Assembly: GCA_965644495.1 (NCBI GenBank)
Contig: CBFFSA010000001.1
Span: forward strand, 2,914,001-2,978,000
Length of the DNA: 64,000 nucleotides
Reading direction: 5' to 3'
Source: Perkinsela sp. CCAP 1560/9
Taxonomy: Eukaryota > Protista > Euglenozoa: Kinetoplastea
The notes beneath the pieces were generated by a model, which saw nothing but the letters and a program-made list of their open reading frames with translations, made no database searches and was not told where the DNA came from. The position numbers and the translations under genes were made by a program. Positions 10,028 through 63,461 of the stretch are shown here, piece by piece. The number at the start of each line of letters is the position of its first letter. Position 1 is the stretch's first letter.

Positions 10028-10513
10028 TCAAGTTTCAGCCTGTGAGAAAGGATTGTTCTCCGATCGATTAAATAAATTTTCTCTAAAATACTGACTCCTA
10101 TCTTCGTGTTTCACTGCCTTGTAAATATCACGCAAGCTGCTAATTGCGTGAGCTACTAGTAGCTCTCGTTTGTTCCGTTTGATGTTGTTAAGGTGTGAAG
10201 GATTCATCTCCAAAACGTCCCCAGATAACAAGGGTCTTTTATTGATCGGTCGACGCGTTCGATCCTTTCTTCTCATTTTTTGAGATATTTCCACTTTAGT
10301 TTTCAGAGATAAATTCTCTAGCGTGGATCCGAACTGAAAACCTTCCTCAAGAGTTTTAACGTTGCTATCAATGTTTTCGGAAGATGGAATAACGTAGTTT
10401 TCACTATTCTCACTGTTGCCACGACCTTGTTTACTTCGTCCCCGCTTCGTAATTTGCGATCGCTTGAGCCTTTCCTCTCGTGATAACTTCGCTTTGCGAG
10501 TACTCTTAACCAT
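10028..10513 (-). CDS. basic hypothetical protein
   Basis: 161-aa K/R-rich ATG ORF on the cluster strand. Confidence 0.6.
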   Translation of the reverse strand: MVKSTRKAKLSREERLKRSQITKRGRSKQGRGNSENSENYVIPSSENIDSNVKTLEEGFQFGSTLENLSLKTKVEISQKMRRKDRTRRPINKRPLLSGDVLEMNPSHLNNIKRNKRELLVAHAISSLRDIYKAVKHEDRSQYFRENLFNRSENNPFSQAET

Positions 10514-10950
10514 GTTTAAAAAAGATTCAGAAATTCTGAATCAGAATTCACGAAATAAATATTTAGTAGTTTTATAGATATTTAGTTTTATAAATATTTA
10601 GATATTTAGATATTTATGATACTCCTTACTCCTAGTTGAATGAGAGGTCTACGCAGATGATAGATACAGTAACTCAAAAAAGTGTTCAAATGTTTCGACA
10701 TTTTTTAATGTTTTTATTTTTTACCAAAGAGAATCAGAGGATAATGCTGTAGTATATGGTAGTAGTGTAGGCTGGGGTAGTGCTTATATCCCCACGTACT
10801 TTGAGTTCATCAACGATCTTACTACGAAAAACTATGAAAGATATAATGTCAGTCCAACATATGAACACTTTTTTGACTTTTTTTCGGACACGTTTTTTTA
10901 TAGGAAAACGTTCTACTGCTTCACCCTTAATGGACCAAAATGGTTTAGAC

Positions 10951-11889
10951 TTAATACTTAGTAAGTCCCCCCTTCGCCCTGATGACTGCCCTCAAACGAC
11001 GGGGCATGCTTTGGACAAGAGGGAGGCATGCACTTGGAGGAACTTTCGCCCATGCTTTTTGGGCCCGTTCCCATAACTCGATCATTCCTGCGGGTGGGTC
11101 GGGGTAATCTGCCGTTGCCTTTTTCAGTTCAACCCATAGGTTTTCTATGGGGTTTAAGTCGGGAGACTGAGGGGGCCAGTCAAGCACACACAGCTCCTGC
11201 GAATTTAAAAAATCCCGAGCCTTCTTACTCGTGTGCTTCGGATCGTTATCCTGTTGGAAGACGATCCGATCCTTCGTGACACTCAGCTTTTGTAGGGAAG
11301 GGGGCAAATTTTGTTGCAGTATTTGAACGTACTGCTCGGCGTTCATATTCCCGTGAACCAGCTCAATGGTTCCCACACCGTGCTCCATCATGCAACCCCA
11401 TATCATGATGGAGCCGCCACCATACTTGAGCGTACCTTGTGTGTTTCGCTCAGACAGCTCCTCCCCAAAGTCTACCCAAACCCACCGGCTACCATTCGAC
11501 TCGAAACGGCAGATCTTCGTTTCATCCGTGAAAAGTACACGGCCCCAGTCGGCGTGCGTCCAATGCTCGTACTTTCTTGCAAAAGCAAGACGTAGAGCCT
11601 TGTGACGTTTCGTAAGGTAGGGCTTCTTGACCCTCTTCTTTCCCTTCATACCACGCTTACGAAGGGAAACCCGAATGGTTTCCGGGCAAACATCCGCAAT
11701 ACCTTCGTCTCTCAACCTTTTGCTGGCGGCAACTGCGTCTTTTGTGGCGCCGCTAGTGATGAGACGGCGGAGGCGCCTACGGCAAGTATCACTCAGCTTA
11801 CGTGGGCGACCGGTTGGTTGTCTAGATAGCGATGGAAGATATTTATTTTTAATGCGGCTGACATTTCCTACGCTTAAGTTTAAATCGGC
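10951..11889 (-). pseudogene. 5'-truncated Tc1 transposase (left arm)
   Basis: Frame open from ADLNLSVG..GRPRKL through FTDETK, QQDNDPKH, SPDLNPIE; no upstream ATG (in-frame stop at 11922-11920). Confidence 0.88.
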
Positions 11890-11950
11890 GTAGAATGTAG
11901 AAAATAGAGCAACTTGGTTTTATTCTCCTATTGTAGATCTTTGTTCTACT

Positions 11951-12979
11951 ATGCACAGTACACCGAGTTATTTACGAAAGATTGCTATTGAAAAACTTGA
12001 AAACGGATCTTCACTTCGTAGAGTGATTTAAACTTAAGCCGCCGATTTAAACTTAAGCGTAGGAAATGTCAGCCGCATTAAAAATAAATATCTTCCATCG
12101 CTATCTAGACAACCAACCGGTCGCCCACGTAAGCTGAGTGATACTTGCCGTAGGCGCCTCCGCCGTCTCATCACTAGCGGCGCCACAAAAGACGCAGTTG
12201 CCGCCAGCAAAAGGTTGAGAGACGAAGGTATTGCGGATGTTTGCCCGGAAACCATTCGGGTTTCCCTTCGTAAGCGTGGTATGAAGGGAAAGAAGAGGGT
12301 CAAGAAGCCCTACCTTACGAAACGTCACAAGGCTCTACGTCTTGCTTTTGCAAGAAAGTACGAGCATTGGACGCACGCCGACTGGGGCCGTGTACTTTTC
12401 ACGGATGAAACGAAGATCTGCCGTTTCGAGTCGAATGGTAGCCGGTGGGTTTGGGTAGACTTTGGGGAGGAGCTGTCTGAGCGAAACACACAAGGTACGC
12501 TCAAGTATGGTGGCGGCTCCATCATGATATGGGGTTGCATGATGGAGCACGGTGTGGGAACCATTGAGCTGGTTCACGGGAATATGAACGCCGAGCAGTA
12601 CGTTCAAATACTGCAACAAAATTTGCCCCCTTCCCTACAAAAGCTGAGTGTCACGAAGGATCGGATCGTCTTCCAACAGGATAACGATCCGAAGCACACG
12701 AGTAAGAAGGCTCGGGATTTTTTAAATTCGCAGGAGCTGTGTGTGCTTGACTGGCCCCCTCAGTCTCCCGACTTAAACCCCATAGAAAACCTATGGGTTG
12801 AACTGAAAAAGGCAACGGCAGATTACCCCGACCCACCCGCAGGAATGATCGAGTTATGGGAACGGGCCCAAAAAGCATGGGCGAAAGTTCCTCCAAGTGC
12901 ATGCCTCCCTCTTGTCCAAAGCATGCCCCGTCGTTTGAGGGCAGTCATCAGGGCGAAGGGGGGACTTACTAAGTATTAA
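11951..12979 (+). pseudogene. near full-length Tc1 DD34E transposase interrupted by a 12-bp insertion
   Basis: ATG 11951 MHSTPSYLRKIAIEKLENGSSLRRV is in frame with the transposase body; 12-bp insertion at ~12025-12036 adds TAA stops at 12029 and 12035; removing it gives ~338 aa with HTH SLRRVAADLNLS, GRPRKL and D-D34-E. Confidence 0.88.
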
Positions 12980-13418
12980 GTCTAAACCATTTTGGTCCAT
13001 TAAGGGTGAAGCAGTAGAACGTTTTCCTATAAAAAAACGTGTCCGAAAAAAAGTCAAAAAAGTGTTCATATGTTGGACTGACATTATATCTTTCATAGTT
13101 TTTCGTAGTAAGATCGTTGATGAACTCAAAGTACGTGGGGATATAAGCACTACCCCAGCCTACACTACTACCATATACTACAGCATTATCCTCTGATTCT
13201 CTTTGGTAAAAAATAAAAACATTAAAAAATGTCGAAACATTTGAACACTTTTTTGAGTTACTGTATTCATCAGATGTACAATAGGCTATCAAATTAGAGA
13301 CAACAAGCAATTTGTACCTTTCATCTAACAGTCCACATCATATCTTGTAGAAGATGGATGATGACATGTGTATCAAACTAAAAGTTACGAAAAGTTCGTC
13401 CTTCAATCATCGAGTCTA

Positions 13419-15368
13419 TCAAGCAGATCGAGATCGAACAGTGTCCGACTTGAAGATAGAGCTTAATTGTTGGTTGCCATGAAAACCCATGCTTTCAGCA
13501 TTTTCACGTACTTCTGATAGGGGCGAAGCGGTGTATGTTTCATCTGCTGACGATTCACTTTCACTTTCAACAAGGTATTCTACAGCTTGTTTGAGCTGCC
13601 ACGCTTTTGCCGAACTAAGATCCTCAACGTCGTTTTCAAGAAACGCTGCTATCTGCCCCGGAGTAACGTGAAATCGATCTCTACATTCTTGCAGCTTCTC
13701 CACTTTAAGGGTATTTGTGTCGGGTGATTGCGAAGTGAACGAGGTTGAAACAGATTCTGGGTCACCATTTTCTGTTGAGCCTGTGGAGTCATCAGAACAT
13801 GAGCTGTTCCTGCTAAATAAATATTGATCTCGGTGGCATGCTGATGTGTCGTCGTTTTCACAGACCTCTAGAAACCAATCAAAGGTTTTCAACATGTCCT
13901 CTGCTGATAACCGAGCGGAAGGATCTATTTCCAGCATAGGGCGCAAAAACTGAGATATTTCAATCGATTTTTCGGAAGTGAAATTATATTTTTCATATAA
14001 CACATCCTCCAATGACCATAACTTCAAGTCAACAACATGCCGAAAACCACCGTAGCTCGTCAAGAATCGGTCTCGATACTTCCCGTTGCCACGTGCCATA
14101 TGATTAGGAATGGGTCCTAGGGCTTCTACCATCTGGGCTAAATGATCTTCATCGCGGCTGTACTGCTTGGATTCCTTTGGGTCAAACAAAAAATCTCCTG
14201 TTATGAGTTCAAAGGCAAGGCAAGCTGCACTCCACAGATCCGTTGAGGTATCATAGTCGTACCCTAGGATAACTTCAGGACTCCGATACTGCCGTGTCTG
14301 AATTTCATCACTGAACTTTTTATTCCTCCAACAAGCGTTTCCAAAGTCAGCCAAAGTAACCTGCTCCGTACGTCTCTGCTCCCAATCTGCGCTTACTTGA
14401 GTATCTCGTTTCTCATCCCTCTTTTCCGAGTCAACACAAGAGAGAGATTCCGTGGATCCATTCAGCCCGTTTGATGCGTACACAGGCGTAGAATGCTTCT
14501 CCGGTTTACTTTCCGGAATTTTCAGTTGCTTTACTTGTTCTGCCAATTTGTCAGCTTCGTCACTTCCTTGCGAGGGTTCTGCTGGTTGCCCGGGCTTTTT
14601 GACGTCCTTTTCGCGTCTCTTCAGCCTCTTCTTTTGCGACTTTGTAAGTAATTCTGGATTCTTTTCTGAGAGTCTGATGTCTTGAGCACGATCAGGAGGT
14701 ACATAGTTCTGCATGACTTGCTGAATTTTCAAAGTTGGTGCGGAAAGCAGTACATTTTCGGGTTTGAGGTCCGTATGAATGATGCCTAATCTATGAATGT
14801 GCACCAGAGCCTGCAGAATCTGCTTCATTATCTTTTTCACATGAGACAAAGGTAACCCACGATAGTTATGCTTCTCAATCAAATGCAAAATATTTTCTCC
14901 CAGAACTTCAAAAATCATAATCACGTGCTTCCCGTTTGGGCCCCGATGCTCGAAGAAATCAAGCATGTGCGCACAATGTAAAGATTTCCATTCATCATGT
15001 GAGATACTATACCGTATTTGCTTCAATACTTCAATTTCGTCCATAGCTGCTTCTGTGTATTGTGCAGCGCTCTTCTGCACTTTCATAGCCGCAAATAATT
15101 CTGTATTGTAGTCCCACACAAGCCACACGGTAGAGAAATATCCCCATCCTAATTTCTGAATTACGCGATACCGGTTCCAGTAGAGCTCACCTATGTGAAC
15201 AGGATGATATCCCCCTTTTCGGTACTCTCGTTTCCGCTCCATTTCTGTATCGCTAAAATCTTCTTCGCTTTCACTAACATAATCATTTCTTTCTTTTTCC
15301 TTTTTTCTTCGGATCTGCATTTGTGGGTTCTGCGGCCCATTCTTTCGTCTTAAAAGTGCATGTCGCAT
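13419..15368 (-). CDS. SRPK: serine/arginine-rich protein-specific kinase
   Basis: YRKGGYHPV, KLGWGYFSTVWL, HTDLKPEN, spacer insert, ADFGNACW, IQTRQYRSPEV, YSRDEDHLAQ. Confidence 0.95.
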   Translation of the reverse strand: MRHALLRRKNGPQNPQMQIRRKKEKERNDYVSESEEDFSDTEMERKREYRKGGYHPVHIGELYWNRYRVIQKLGWGYFSTVWLVWDYNTELFAAMKVQKSAAQYTEAAMDEIEVLKQIRYSISHDEWKSLHCAHMLDFFEHRGPNGKHVIMIFEVLGENILHLIEKHNYRGLPLSHVKKIMKQILQALVHIHRLGIIHTDLKPENVLLSAPTLKIQQVMQNYVPPDRAQDIRLSEKNPELLTKSQKKRLKRREKDVKKPGQPAEPSQGSDEADKLAEQVKQLKIPESKPEKHSTPVYASNGLNGSTESLSCVDSEKRDEKRDTQVSADWEQRRTEQVTLADFGNACWRNKKFSDEIQTRQYRSPEVILGYDYDTSTDLWSAACLAFELITGDFLFDPKESKQYSRDEDHLAQMVEALGPIPNHMARGNGKYRDRFLTSYGGFRHVVDLKLWSLEDVLYEKYNFTSEKSIEISQFLRPMLEIDPSARLSAEDMLKTFDWFLEVCENDDTSACHRDQYLFSRNSSCSDDSTGSTENGDPESVSTSFTSQSPDTNTLKVEKLQECRDRFHVTPGQIAAFLENDVEDLSSAKAWQLKQAVEYLVESESESSADETYTASPLSEVRENAESMGFHGNQQLSSIFKSDTVRSRSA

Positions 15369-41529: not shown

Positions 41530-41723
41530 CGGTAATCCGAAAAAAAGGTCTGAAAACTCCTCTTTGATTAAGTATAAATAAATCGTCTTACAATGTAAGA
41601 TACATTGTTGAACTGCAGTACCCTGTTGATCCTAACATTCAGATTATTTCAATAGTTACTATACATGTGAGCGGCTGCGGGTGAAATCTCGATGAAACCC
41701 CGCTACCCACGGCCACTCATGTA

Positions 41724-42570
41724 CAGGGGGTGACACTTGAACCTGGGGGGTCTAAGATTTGTAAAAACAGCTCAGCTTTGAAGAATAATGCGGCGTTGGA
41801 GAGCTCTCTCCGAGTTGTTTGCCTTCGGCGTATTCGGACCGCCCAAGTTAAACAAATTAATTCGAAGACAAAAAAACATGGGTTTTTCATGTGAAAAATT
41901 GTTGATTTTTCTTTTTTCCCCTTTTTATGACACAAAAGCGAGTTCGCTCGAGGACATCGCATGGTACATTGTCTGCCTGATCGTATTCTTCTCCCACAAA
42001 GCTCCACAATGCTTCTAGTAGCAGAGTATGAGCAAACACAGTCTTTCTACCGAACATCTTAGAACTTTAGGGTGCACGAAGACACTATAAAGCGATGGAT
42101 TGAACGCCATTTGGCGACTGGGGATATCGAAAGTCACGTTCCTTTGCGTGCTTCCCTTGTTTCCACTCCTCTCCTCAAGGAAACAGCGTTAAAAGTAAAT
42201 GGTGACGGTCAGGGATGTGACTTACATGTATGTCATTCCGTCCTTGAGAGAACTCCTAAGGGAGCTGCATCGACGAGAATTTTTGTGTCCTAAGGAATAT
42301 TTAATCAAAGAAGGAGATAATCAAAGTTCCTTTTTAGCACCTCACAAGATTCGCCGAATGCAATTCGCGAACGACATGATGCAGCTCTCCGATAAAGCTC
42401 TCGAGGAAATTGTTTTTTCTGACCAAAAAAAATATTGTTGCAAAGCATCAGCGAAATTGCTTTGTACTAAGACATGTAACTCTGAGAGAGCTCTGCAATG
42501 CGCTATTCTTTTTGAAAATTGGGAAGTTTTTACAAGTTTTAGACCCCCCAGGTGCAAGTGACACCCCCTG
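41724..42570 (+). mobile_element. internally deleted Tc1-like element with imperfect TIRs of ~90 bp
   Basis: TA-CAGGGGGTG(A/T)CACTTG.ACCTGGGGGGTCTAA at both ends; internal relics TIKRWIERH..TGD and HKIRRMQFA...IVFSDQKK. Confidence 0.85.
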
Positions 42571-42578
42571 TATACACA

Positions 42579-45572: not shown

Positions 45573-45804
45573 GCATACTTTTTGAAATTTTCAAAATTTT
45601 AAATTTAAAAATCGAGCGCAGGGAGGTGGTAGAGTATGCCGCGGCGATGATTTTCGACCCCCATGTTTGGGGGTGACCCGACCTCGTACGCGCAGGAGGG
45701 GTCCGTCAAGGTCAAAATTTCCGAACTTTTTGGGATCACGGAATAAAAGCTGTTCAAAAAAAAACGTTAAACCACTTTTTCCCCAAAATCGATTCCTAAG
45801 TCGA

Positions 45805-46025
45805 ATTTTGAGAGTTTGGGACCTCAACTACCATTCTGTGTCGTTTTTTCGTCAGATGCGTCTCCTAACCCTACTGGTAAACCTCAAAAATGGCCTAAAC
45901 TCGGGGTAAATTTTTTCATGTTTCGCCTAAGAATCGGGCTATTTCAGAATCGAGGAACACGAATTCTTCGTGGTTTTTTGGTAACTTTTCTTCTTTGGCT
46001 CTTCGTTAAACGCGGAGGTAGTTTT
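45805..46025 (+). repeat. dispersed repeat, copy 1 (copy 2 at 63239-63461)
   Basis: Shared ATTTTGAGAGTTTGG.ACCTCA.CTACCA...TACTGGTAA and identical CTTCGTTAAACGCGGAGGTAGTTTT. Confidence 0.85.
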
Positions 46026-58305: not shown

Positions 58306-59534
58306 GGTGAAATTCAAGCAAAATTCGCCCTTTCTGAAAAAAAAGGAAGGTCGTCCCCACTAAAAATAATTGTATCTTTTTTGTATCGTATCATGTATTT
58401 CCAGTTTTTCCTTTATTTTTCAGATTCATTTTTCAGACTCCTCAAATCCAACACATGCCCTGTAAAGGATGCAACGGTTTCGCTTGCCGAGGAAATCTCA
58501 CTTTGAGCAAAGTTTCTGTGTGGAGCGAATCGAAATGCAGGGAGTGGTTAAGAACCCATAAGTTGGTGGCTCAGAAGGTTGCATGTTATAAAAGACATAA
58601 GGCGCCCTGTACTACGCACGTCACTGACGGGAAATGGAGGTGTACTAAAAAATGCAAAGGAATGTACGCCACCTTAGGACCTCTCGTACCTGGAAGGGCA
58701 CAAAGAAGTGCAAAGCAAACATTAAAGTACATAATTTTATACGCTCGTGGTGGACGACATGCGGATTCGGCAGCGGAGACAGAACTTAGTCAGCAGACCA
58801 TTGTGTCTCTAAGGCAATGGATGGATGGCATGATGGCCACAGCTCATGTTCGCCGACGTATCAGGAATCGCGGCAGCGTTGCTTCAATGCAATGCGATGA
58901 GACATTTTTTTCTGTACGGAAACGTCACCGAGGTTCTCATGGTGCAAGACGGATGCGAGATGATGGTACAGAAGTTGCACAGACAATTGTGACTACTCGA
59001 GCGAACAAATTATCTGAAATGTTCATGGAAGTTGTACCTGATCGTAAGGCGAGCACGTTACTTCCTCGAATTGAAGATCTGGCGAGCCGGGGGAGGATAC
59101 GAATTTGGACCGACGGGGCGCGTCACAATATCCGCCTTGGTGGACGCTATAAGTGGAATAGCGTGAACCACCGCCGAGAATGGATAACAGAAGAGGGTGT
59201 CCACACGAATACTGTGGAGTGCGCGAATTCGGTGGCGAAGAAGAGACTTAATCGAGAAGGAAACGTAATAGGAAGGAAAAAGAATAAACGGGCAGATCGT
59301 GTGCAAGCCAATGCTGAAAAATGCAACGGCAGCCTACGGTACAATGGCGGCGATGTAATGCTGCGCATCCTACAGAATCTACAAGATCATTTTCATTGTA
59401 TTCATTTGTAAGTCTTGTCCAAGTATTTAAGTCGAAAACTAGAAGCGAAAAGTGTTGATTTCATGGCACAAAATTTTTGAAAACCGGAAAAAAAACTTTT
59501 TTTAAAAAAAGGCGAATTTTGCTTTAATTTAACC
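58306..59534 (+). mobile_element. complete Merlin DNA transposon (1229 bp)
   Basis: GG-initial imperfect TIRs GGT.AAATT.AAGCAAAATTCGCC; exact 8-bp TSD GATAATTT at 58298-58305 and 59535-59542. Confidence 0.93.
58455..59411 (+). CDS. Merlin/IS1595-family DDE transposase, intact ORF
   Basis: N-terminal Cys/His cluster, CDETFF..RKRHRG, IWTDG, VNH..E....GVHTNTVE. Confidence 0.9.
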   Translation: MPCKGCNGFACRGNLTLSKVSVWSESKCREWLRTHKLVAQKVACYKRHKAPCTTHVTDGKWRCTKKCKGMYATLGPLVPGRAQRSAKQTLKYIILYARGGRHADSAAETELSQQTIVSLRQWMDGMMATAHVRRRIRNRGSVASMQCDETFFSVRKRHRGSHGARRMRDDGTEVAQTIVTTRANKLSEMFMEVVPDRKASTLLPRIEDLASRGRIRIWTDGARHNIRLGGRYKWNSVNHRREWITEEGVHTNTVECANSVAKKRLNREGNVIGRKKNKRADRVQANAEKCNGSLRYNGGDVMLRILQNLQDHFHCIHL

Positions 59535-62991: not shown

Positions 62992-63238
62992 GGGGGGGTG
63001 GGTGGAGGTTAGGGGTGTGGAGATAGGGTGAAGAGATAAAGAAGAGGGGGTTTGGTGTGTGTAGGGAGTGGGTAGGGGCACCTAGTGGATAGGATTCTAA
63101 ACTATCATGGGGTATAAATTATATTACGGTGGTTGTATAACTACCGCTCTACCCTTGATTATAGAAAAAAAGTGAACAAACAGTGAAAATATAAGAGTAA
63201 CACAGGAAAGTACTTTTCCAAAATTAACTCCTCCACGT

Positions 63239-63461
63239 ATTTTGAGAGTTTGGAACCTCAGCTACCACTCTACGACGTTTTTTTGTTCAGATTTACTTCC
63301 TACCCGTACTGGTAAGGCATCAAAAACGGTCTAAAGTTTGGCTAAAATTTCGCTTTTTTGACCTACAAATTGGTCTTTTTCACCAAAAAAAATGGGATGA
63401 ATGCATGATCTTTTCGCAATACCTCTTTTTTAGTCGCTTCGTTAAACGCGGAGGTAGTTTT
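63239..63461 (+). repeat. dispersed repeat, copy 2 (copy 1 at 45805-46025)
   Basis: See copy 1. Confidence 0.85.

Follow-up and report, generated by a model that had tools for sequence, protein, structure and literature searches.

The fold-back at 10667-13263 of the window (the whole 64,000-nucleotide stretch of DNA analysed here) is probably a young, polymorphic family-A copy from a Tc1 clade in which the native element is a two-gene palindrome of 2.6-2.7 kb. The native order is end, transposase, short spacer, transposase, end, with the genes head to head. Judged from the copies in the genome, the fold-back is the native form of this DD34E Tc1 clade in its prokinetoplastid host and not a one-off accident. 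The interest lies in the clade architecture and in a pair of filled and empty alleles; the window copy itself is a broken member of the clade, not a new system. The features of the locus are listed below.

10028-10513, minus strand: host ORF downstream of the element, 161 aa, no Pfam family, starting 153 bp past the element
10665-10666, no strand: left TA target-site duplication, a single TA in the empty allele
10667-11890, minus strand: left arm, with the CAGT terminus, a 3′ end of 284 bp and codons 26-338 of the transposase, without the start codon, which is deleted
10667-10880, plus strand: left end module of ~213 bp, carrying one outer repeat and, inverted, one inner repeat (motif matches at 10677 and 10863)
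10951-11890, minus strand: 5′-truncated transposase frame
11891-11950, no strand: true family spacer, 60 of 61 bp kept
11951-12979, plus strand: right transposase gene, DD34E, 338 of 338 codons with two stops inside, ATG at 11951
12026-12037, plus strand: private 12-bp in-frame insertion that copies the bases immediately 3′ of it, with TAA as codons 27 and 29
12040-13263, plus strand: right arm, identical to the left arm in inverted orientation
13050-13263, plus strand: right ~213-bp end module (motif matches at 13057 and 13243)
13264-13265, no strand: right TA target-site duplication, a single TA in the empty allele
13419-15368, minus strand: SRPK kinase, the host gene upstream of the element, with its stop codon 155 bp before the element

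The two inverted arms (10667-11890 and 12040-13263) show 0 mismatches over 1224 bp, far above chance expectation, and the symmetry extends through the TA at 10665-10666 and 13264-13265 and one chance base before it is lost. Both termini start with CAGT. Each arm comprises codons 26-338 of a DD34E transposase (PF13358 and PF01498; D-to-E spacing 34) and the 284-bp 3′ end. Long host ORFs throughout the window lie on the minus strand and have no visible introns. An earlier sequence-only reading of this DNA had described identical 1224-bp inverted arms carrying most of a transposase and the 3′ end, symmetry ending at TA-flanked termini, and host genes of one orientation on both sides, and these descriptions hold. 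The 149-bp spacer that it reported stands as the distance between the arms, but only 60 bp (11891-11950) of it is true spacer; the remainder consists of the first 77 nt of the right ORF and the 12-bp in-frame insertion.

That neither arm makes full-length transposase, as that reading also had it, is likewise to be expected from the sequence, since the left arm has lost codons 1-25 with its start and the right arm carries two in-frame TAA stops. The left arm is the one in sense to the minus-strand host transcription. Its first AUG (11864) is out of frame and opens 23 codons, and its first in-frame AUG, at 11649, would yield 232 aa without most of the DNA-binding region. The 12-bp insertion is missing in the family-A copies L002 and L004-L007. 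Both lesions are central and private to the window copy, and both sit at codons 25-26, which is the same point of the fold; this suggests that a single local repair event, at or after insertion, made them. The window arms share 2 private substitutions, as do the arms of another complete copy (L036), and arms of one copy seem to exchange sequence. A reassigned-stop genetic code was considered for the stops and rejected, since they are confined to the private insertion and the standard code leaves the host ORFs open.

The insertion can be followed in a second assembly (ENA ERZ24900291), which covers the locus (L060) with only parts of the filled allele; the two assemblies may have reads in common, and the structure was read from assembly consensus sequences. 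The L060 consensus is a mosaic of an empty-site junction and pieces of both element ends. The junction runs from the left flank through one TA into the right flank, whose next 491 bp show 3 differences to the window sequence; the consensus also holds left-end pieces and about 360-400 bp of the right element end, followed by window-type flank. The simplest reading is that the assembler merged filled and empty alleles. Because an empty site with one TA is mixed with pieces of both ends, the unit entered a single TA with both ends in one target, and the insertion is polymorphic. The empty-site allele that the earlier reading proposed to look for is present, with an exact junction. The window arm lies 0.33% from the family-A consensus, against 1.0-3.6% for the other A copies, and by this measure the window copy is the youngest of its family and a recent insertion.

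Dozens of related segments occur in the genome, and other fold-back copies, also named as a check, are among them. For instance, L008 of family B (C1:1791099-1793761) has the whole palindrome: two intact head-to-head ORFs of 338 aa, a 57-bp spacer, TA ends and arms that differ at 3 sites; it is 79% identical to the window in DNA and 81% in protein. In L036 of family C (C1:3079535-3082229), at 52% protein identity to family B, the palindrome is likewise complete, with both 335-aa ORFs intact, a 97-bp spacer and 3 arm differences. An autonomous-looking copy of about 338 aa, which had been named as a check, is present in family B, but no intact family-A ORF was found in the genome, a count that is a lower bound. 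In most copies part of one arm is lost. Two-ended fold-backs with internal deletions are represented by L015, L017, L023, L026/28, L046 and L059, and more fold-backs on C21, C13 and C57 are known by coordinates only, as are distant Tc1-like families of 28-34% identity.

The truncated copies retain the same plan. Every family-A copy that reaches the ATG (L002, L004-L007, L017 and L022) continues into the same spacer, in either polarity, and an inverted stub of the second gene. Across families, copies extending beyond the ATG keep the spacer, most of them with an inverted ATG stub, and a further family (L044) has an ATG stub, the spacer and a retained gene. Spacers between the divergent transposase genes of the clade measure 42-97 bp. 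In the copies read, no terminus just upstream of the ATG, that is, no ordinary 5′ TIR, was seen. These copies do not fit the earlier idea that the locus is an accidental, Mu-killer-like derivative of an ordinary element, as intact, autonomous-looking copies are equally palindromic. The palindromic families form one clade (SH-aLRT 100 in a quick tree without bootstrap, in which the out-of-frame row famA_L007arm is disregarded). Between families A and B, dN is 0.12 and dS 1.0, with dN/dS about 0.12; from this comparison the transposase stayed under selection while the architecture persisted.

Several other repeats were observed beside these copies. Locus C18:153523-155016 (G000, L026/L028) and L056 have the same flanks, with the family-B fold-back interior inverted between the two assemblies; the G000 locus has an extra 447-bp deletion, and a flip between arms or an assembly error is possible. 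L005 and L006 (C2:1301231 and C13:190362) are a single A copy that was duplicated together with some 7 kb of flanking DNA, at 97.9% identity; it sits in an (ATAG)n run, with another such run past the stub. A conventional single-ORF Tc1-like element with 116-bp TIRs lies at L040:4814-6352, so ordinary and palindromic designs coexist in the genome. A long inverted pair (L051:2376-4803; 764 bp, 88%) adjoins a family-A copy and is unrelated to its transposase.

The closest relatives outside the genome share 40-48% identity and have the ordinary design. A TIR pair surrounds one ORF in about 70 of the 84 outside loci, with TIRs mostly of 210-240 bp, and a second transposase arm appears in 0 of 84, many of them on short contigs and 61 with at least 250 bp upstream. 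Since the 3′ TIR of these relatives contains the same inverted inner repeat as the window element ends, the clade most likely arose through replacement of its 5′ TIR with an inverted copy of the gene and the 3′ TIR. The repeats in the ~213-bp end modules are likely candidates for transposase sites. As a special feature of the palindromes the inverted inner repeat was rejected, because ordinary relatives (L061 and L063) have the same layout. A 938-bp inverted repeat in L122, tried as a second palindromic case, was rejected as non-coding.

Kinetoplastid genes have no promoters of their own; host transcription runs one way, and messages are trans-spliced behind pyrimidine tracts. With one gene, an element would be in sense to the host in only half of its insertions; a mirror element would offer a sense arm every time. 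The spacers of families A, B and C are purine- and then pyrimidine-rich read either way (about 0.7 purine in the first half, 0.24-0.39 in the second), which places a pyrimidine-rich leader before each ATG. The spacer fits a candidate two-way trans-splicing signal, with the qualification that host 5′ regions are only loosely T-rich and the signal is not diagnostic. A spliced-leader-like motif had 2 matches, each with 2 mismatches to the pattern used, and serves as a lead only.

As a tentative further reading, the clade may be an autonomous Tc1 lineage adapted to kinetoplastid expression, in which the 5′ end was traded for a mirror gene. The two-way spacer would draw trans-splicing and guarantee a sense mRNA, perhaps cutting the precursor between the arms, and the antisense arm would limit the element through RNAi; the window copy would be a case with only its silencing output left. 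In the main reading, given at the outset, the downstream arm would in either landing orientation be a sense gene with a pyrimidine-rich leader, and by this means, through one-way host transcription and trans-splicing, the mirror design would persist. Transposase from an intact arm would bind the two identical ends and move the whole unit by cut-and-paste into a TA, as expected from Tc1 biology. The element would pay for the design with antisense or hairpin RNA and with unstable DNA. At the window locus, host transcription would meet the right arm antisense and the left arm in sense. Local repair or a template switch at the centre probably removed the start of the sense arm and put stops in the other. 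Any hairpin RNA from the window copy would be a by-product common to its relatives.

A dedicated silencing locus, which the sequence-only reading had proposed as a possibility, would be another way to read the window copy: a perfect 1.2-kb stem with both coding starts lost, acting like Mu killer as a dominant trans-silencer of the family. This we regard as unlikely. The perfect arms do lie 155 bp behind a housekeeping gene, and a long stem is predicted for the unprocessed minus-strand transcript (-189.6 kcal/mol and z -22 for the centre region), in line with the suggestion that read-through RNA could form long dsRNA. A PAZ-Piwi Argonaute is present in three copies, and in T. brucei 7 of 7 large inverted repeats gave small RNAs (PMC3447711). 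Of the window's 1204 21-mers, 812-896 match other A copies perfectly, and an intact A ORF was not found. Nevertheless, intact copies of B and C are palindromes to the same degree, and against intact family B only 8-10 of the 1204 21-mers match perfectly (290 with at most 2 mismatches), whereas 0 of 1204 match family C. The perfect siRNA matches would therefore fall on broken A copies and hardly on B or C, which argues against a trans-acting silencer of the family. The window copy, as the youngest of family A, is also unlikely to account for decay among the older copies, the filled allele is polymorphic, and even in the case of Mu killer the read-through hairpin model has been questioned (PMC3440606). 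Of the RNAi genes, proposed as a check, the Argonaute is there, but the RNase III (Dicer) search of the genome returned a single weak match (E 0.02) and identified no Dicer. Given the equally palindromic intact copies and the few 21-mers matching family B, a special one-off Mu-killer role of the window copy is unlikely; hairpin siRNAs from the clade as a whole, with the window locus included, are plausible. The locus was further suggested to be open to non-autonomous mobilisation, yet no daughter copy with the window lesions was found.

That the structure is an artefact, with one ordinary element turned back on itself during library amplification or in assembly, is very improbable. The 100% identity of the arms and the garbled second assembly at the site would agree with it, but the flanks are unique and collinear with a TA at both ends, and the garbling is explained by the mix of filled and empty alleles, with both element ends present. 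Arms differ elsewhere (3 sites in L008 and 3 in L036), other fold-back loci recur in the second assembly, and the ATG-spacer-ATG layout, with differing spacers, recurs in four families, whose amino-acid identity falls to about 52%. It is somewhat less improbable, though still doubtful, that the palindrome is remade repeatedly by fold-back repair during transposition as a by-product of no selective value. In its favour, the two arms of one copy resemble each other at least as closely as they do the arms of other copies, the arms share 2 private substitutions in the window copy and 2 in L036, and one locus has its interior inverted between the assemblies. Against this, each family has inherited a fixed asymmetric spacer between two ATGs, where a fresh fold-back would give variable junctions, and arm-to-arm conversion in an inherited palindrome explains the shared variants equally well.

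The assembly carrying the window comprises 21 Mb in 110 contigs. In a quick tree without bootstrap, the window SRPK clusters with two environmental proteins and a PhF_6 sequence (SH-aLRT 99), and this cluster is sister to a trypanosomatid-containing group. PhF-6 is the prokinetoplastid Papus. This placement makes an early-branching kinetoplastid the most likely host. The three Argonaute genes are 99% identical and lie about 11-13 kb apart (L031-L033; G000 C7:656178-681371). Two catalytic Asp motifs are visible in them, and the last catalytic position looks non-canonical. A second, Piwi-only protein in two copies (L034, C11:37638; L035, C21:115027) resembles the kinetoplastid PIWI-type paralogue.

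Elsewhere in the window, an intact-looking Merlin/IS1595-type element with 38-bp imperfect TIRs occupies 58306-59534. Its 318-aa ORF (58455-59411, PF12762) is on the plus strand, against the host gene direction, and a near-match 8-bp repeat in the flanks may be a target duplication; published kinetoplastid Merlins have no TIRs (PMC8101967). A 104-bp inverted pair (79%) around 643 bp at 41722-42572 is a possible MITE, and 110-200-bp self-inverted repeats occur in the flanks of many other loci. Two diverged copies of one repeat, each after a G-rich tract, lie at 45802-46025 and 63236-63461, and a Rad51/DMC1-family gene at 947-2095.

Long perfect palindromes are normally unstable and trigger RNAi. 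Yet this Tc1 clade has retained one while its proteins diverged by about 50%, in a host that possesses Argonaute, and polymorphic insertions continue. The clade makes it possible to test directly how a DNA transposon deals with one-way transcription that lacks promoters, and the locus offers a natural pair of filled and empty alleles for measuring hairpin siRNA output and the effect on SRPK mRNA.

Among known systems, maize Mu killer resembles the window copy in a ~1.3 kb inverted duplication of a transposase gene, two same ends and adjoining host genes (PMC3440606). Mu killer is a single derivative of the non-palindromic MuDR, with a duplicated 5′ part and genetically shown dominant silencing (PMC3440606), whereas the clade duplicates 3′ parts, the form is the family norm, and silencing is a putative property. 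The window copy has the inverted transposase duplication with two like ends, but is neither a unique derivative of a non-palindromic autonomous element nor matched well enough to target the autonomous one. The large inverted repeats of T. brucei share near-identical inverted arms in a kinetoplastid and could feed RNAi; they are not described as DNA transposons, and their siRNAs were measured in T. brucei (PMC3447711). Rpmar49 and Rpmar17 mariners also have one end replaced by the inverted other, two 3′ ends and variable central deletions (PMC4678618), and the Dromar7/11 MITEs an end replaced by an inverted copy of the other (PMC4161770). These are short, non-autonomous derivatives alongside ordinary full-length elements (PMC4678618, PMC4161770). 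The palindromic clade shows the same replacement of the 5′ part by an inverted 3′ part; unlike them, it is not a short non-coding lineage needing an ordinary partner, as complete copies code twice, the form extends over several families, and among the copies read no ordinary full-length partner was found.

The Merlins of Perkinsela and Bodo saltans are likewise DNA transposons of early-branching kinetoplastids, but they belong to another superfamily and are reported to lack TIRs and TSDs and to be inactive (PMC8101967); in the Tc1 clade, ends are intact and an insertion is polymorphic. Inactive Merlin is the only kind of DNA transposon named in the single kinetoplastid survey that was found (PMC8101967). 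No report of an autonomous two-gene palindromic Tc1 was found in the open-access literature. The repeats of Galileo and Foldback are non-coding and enclose one central transposase gene. Galileo/Foldback elements share long terminal inverted repeats and structural instability; they belong to the P superfamily and their repeats are internally repetitive (PMC3573991).

The closest likeness is to Tc1 itself (IS630-Tc1-mariner, DD34E, long-TIR type), with a 335-338-aa DD34E transposase, CAGT terminal inverted repeats and a TA duplication, and with end modules similar to those of 210-240 bp in the nearest environmental relatives. The polymorphic insertion and a dN/dS of about 0.12 between families are indirect indications of cut-and-paste capacity. 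Tc1 elements carry one gene between a 5′ and a 3′ TIR, whereas this clade lacks the 5′ TIR, has an inverted whole gene and 3′ end on that side, and possesses inverted repeats that are 1.2-1.3 kb long and coding. With two head-to-head genes and two 3′-type ends, the clade is a variant of Tc1.
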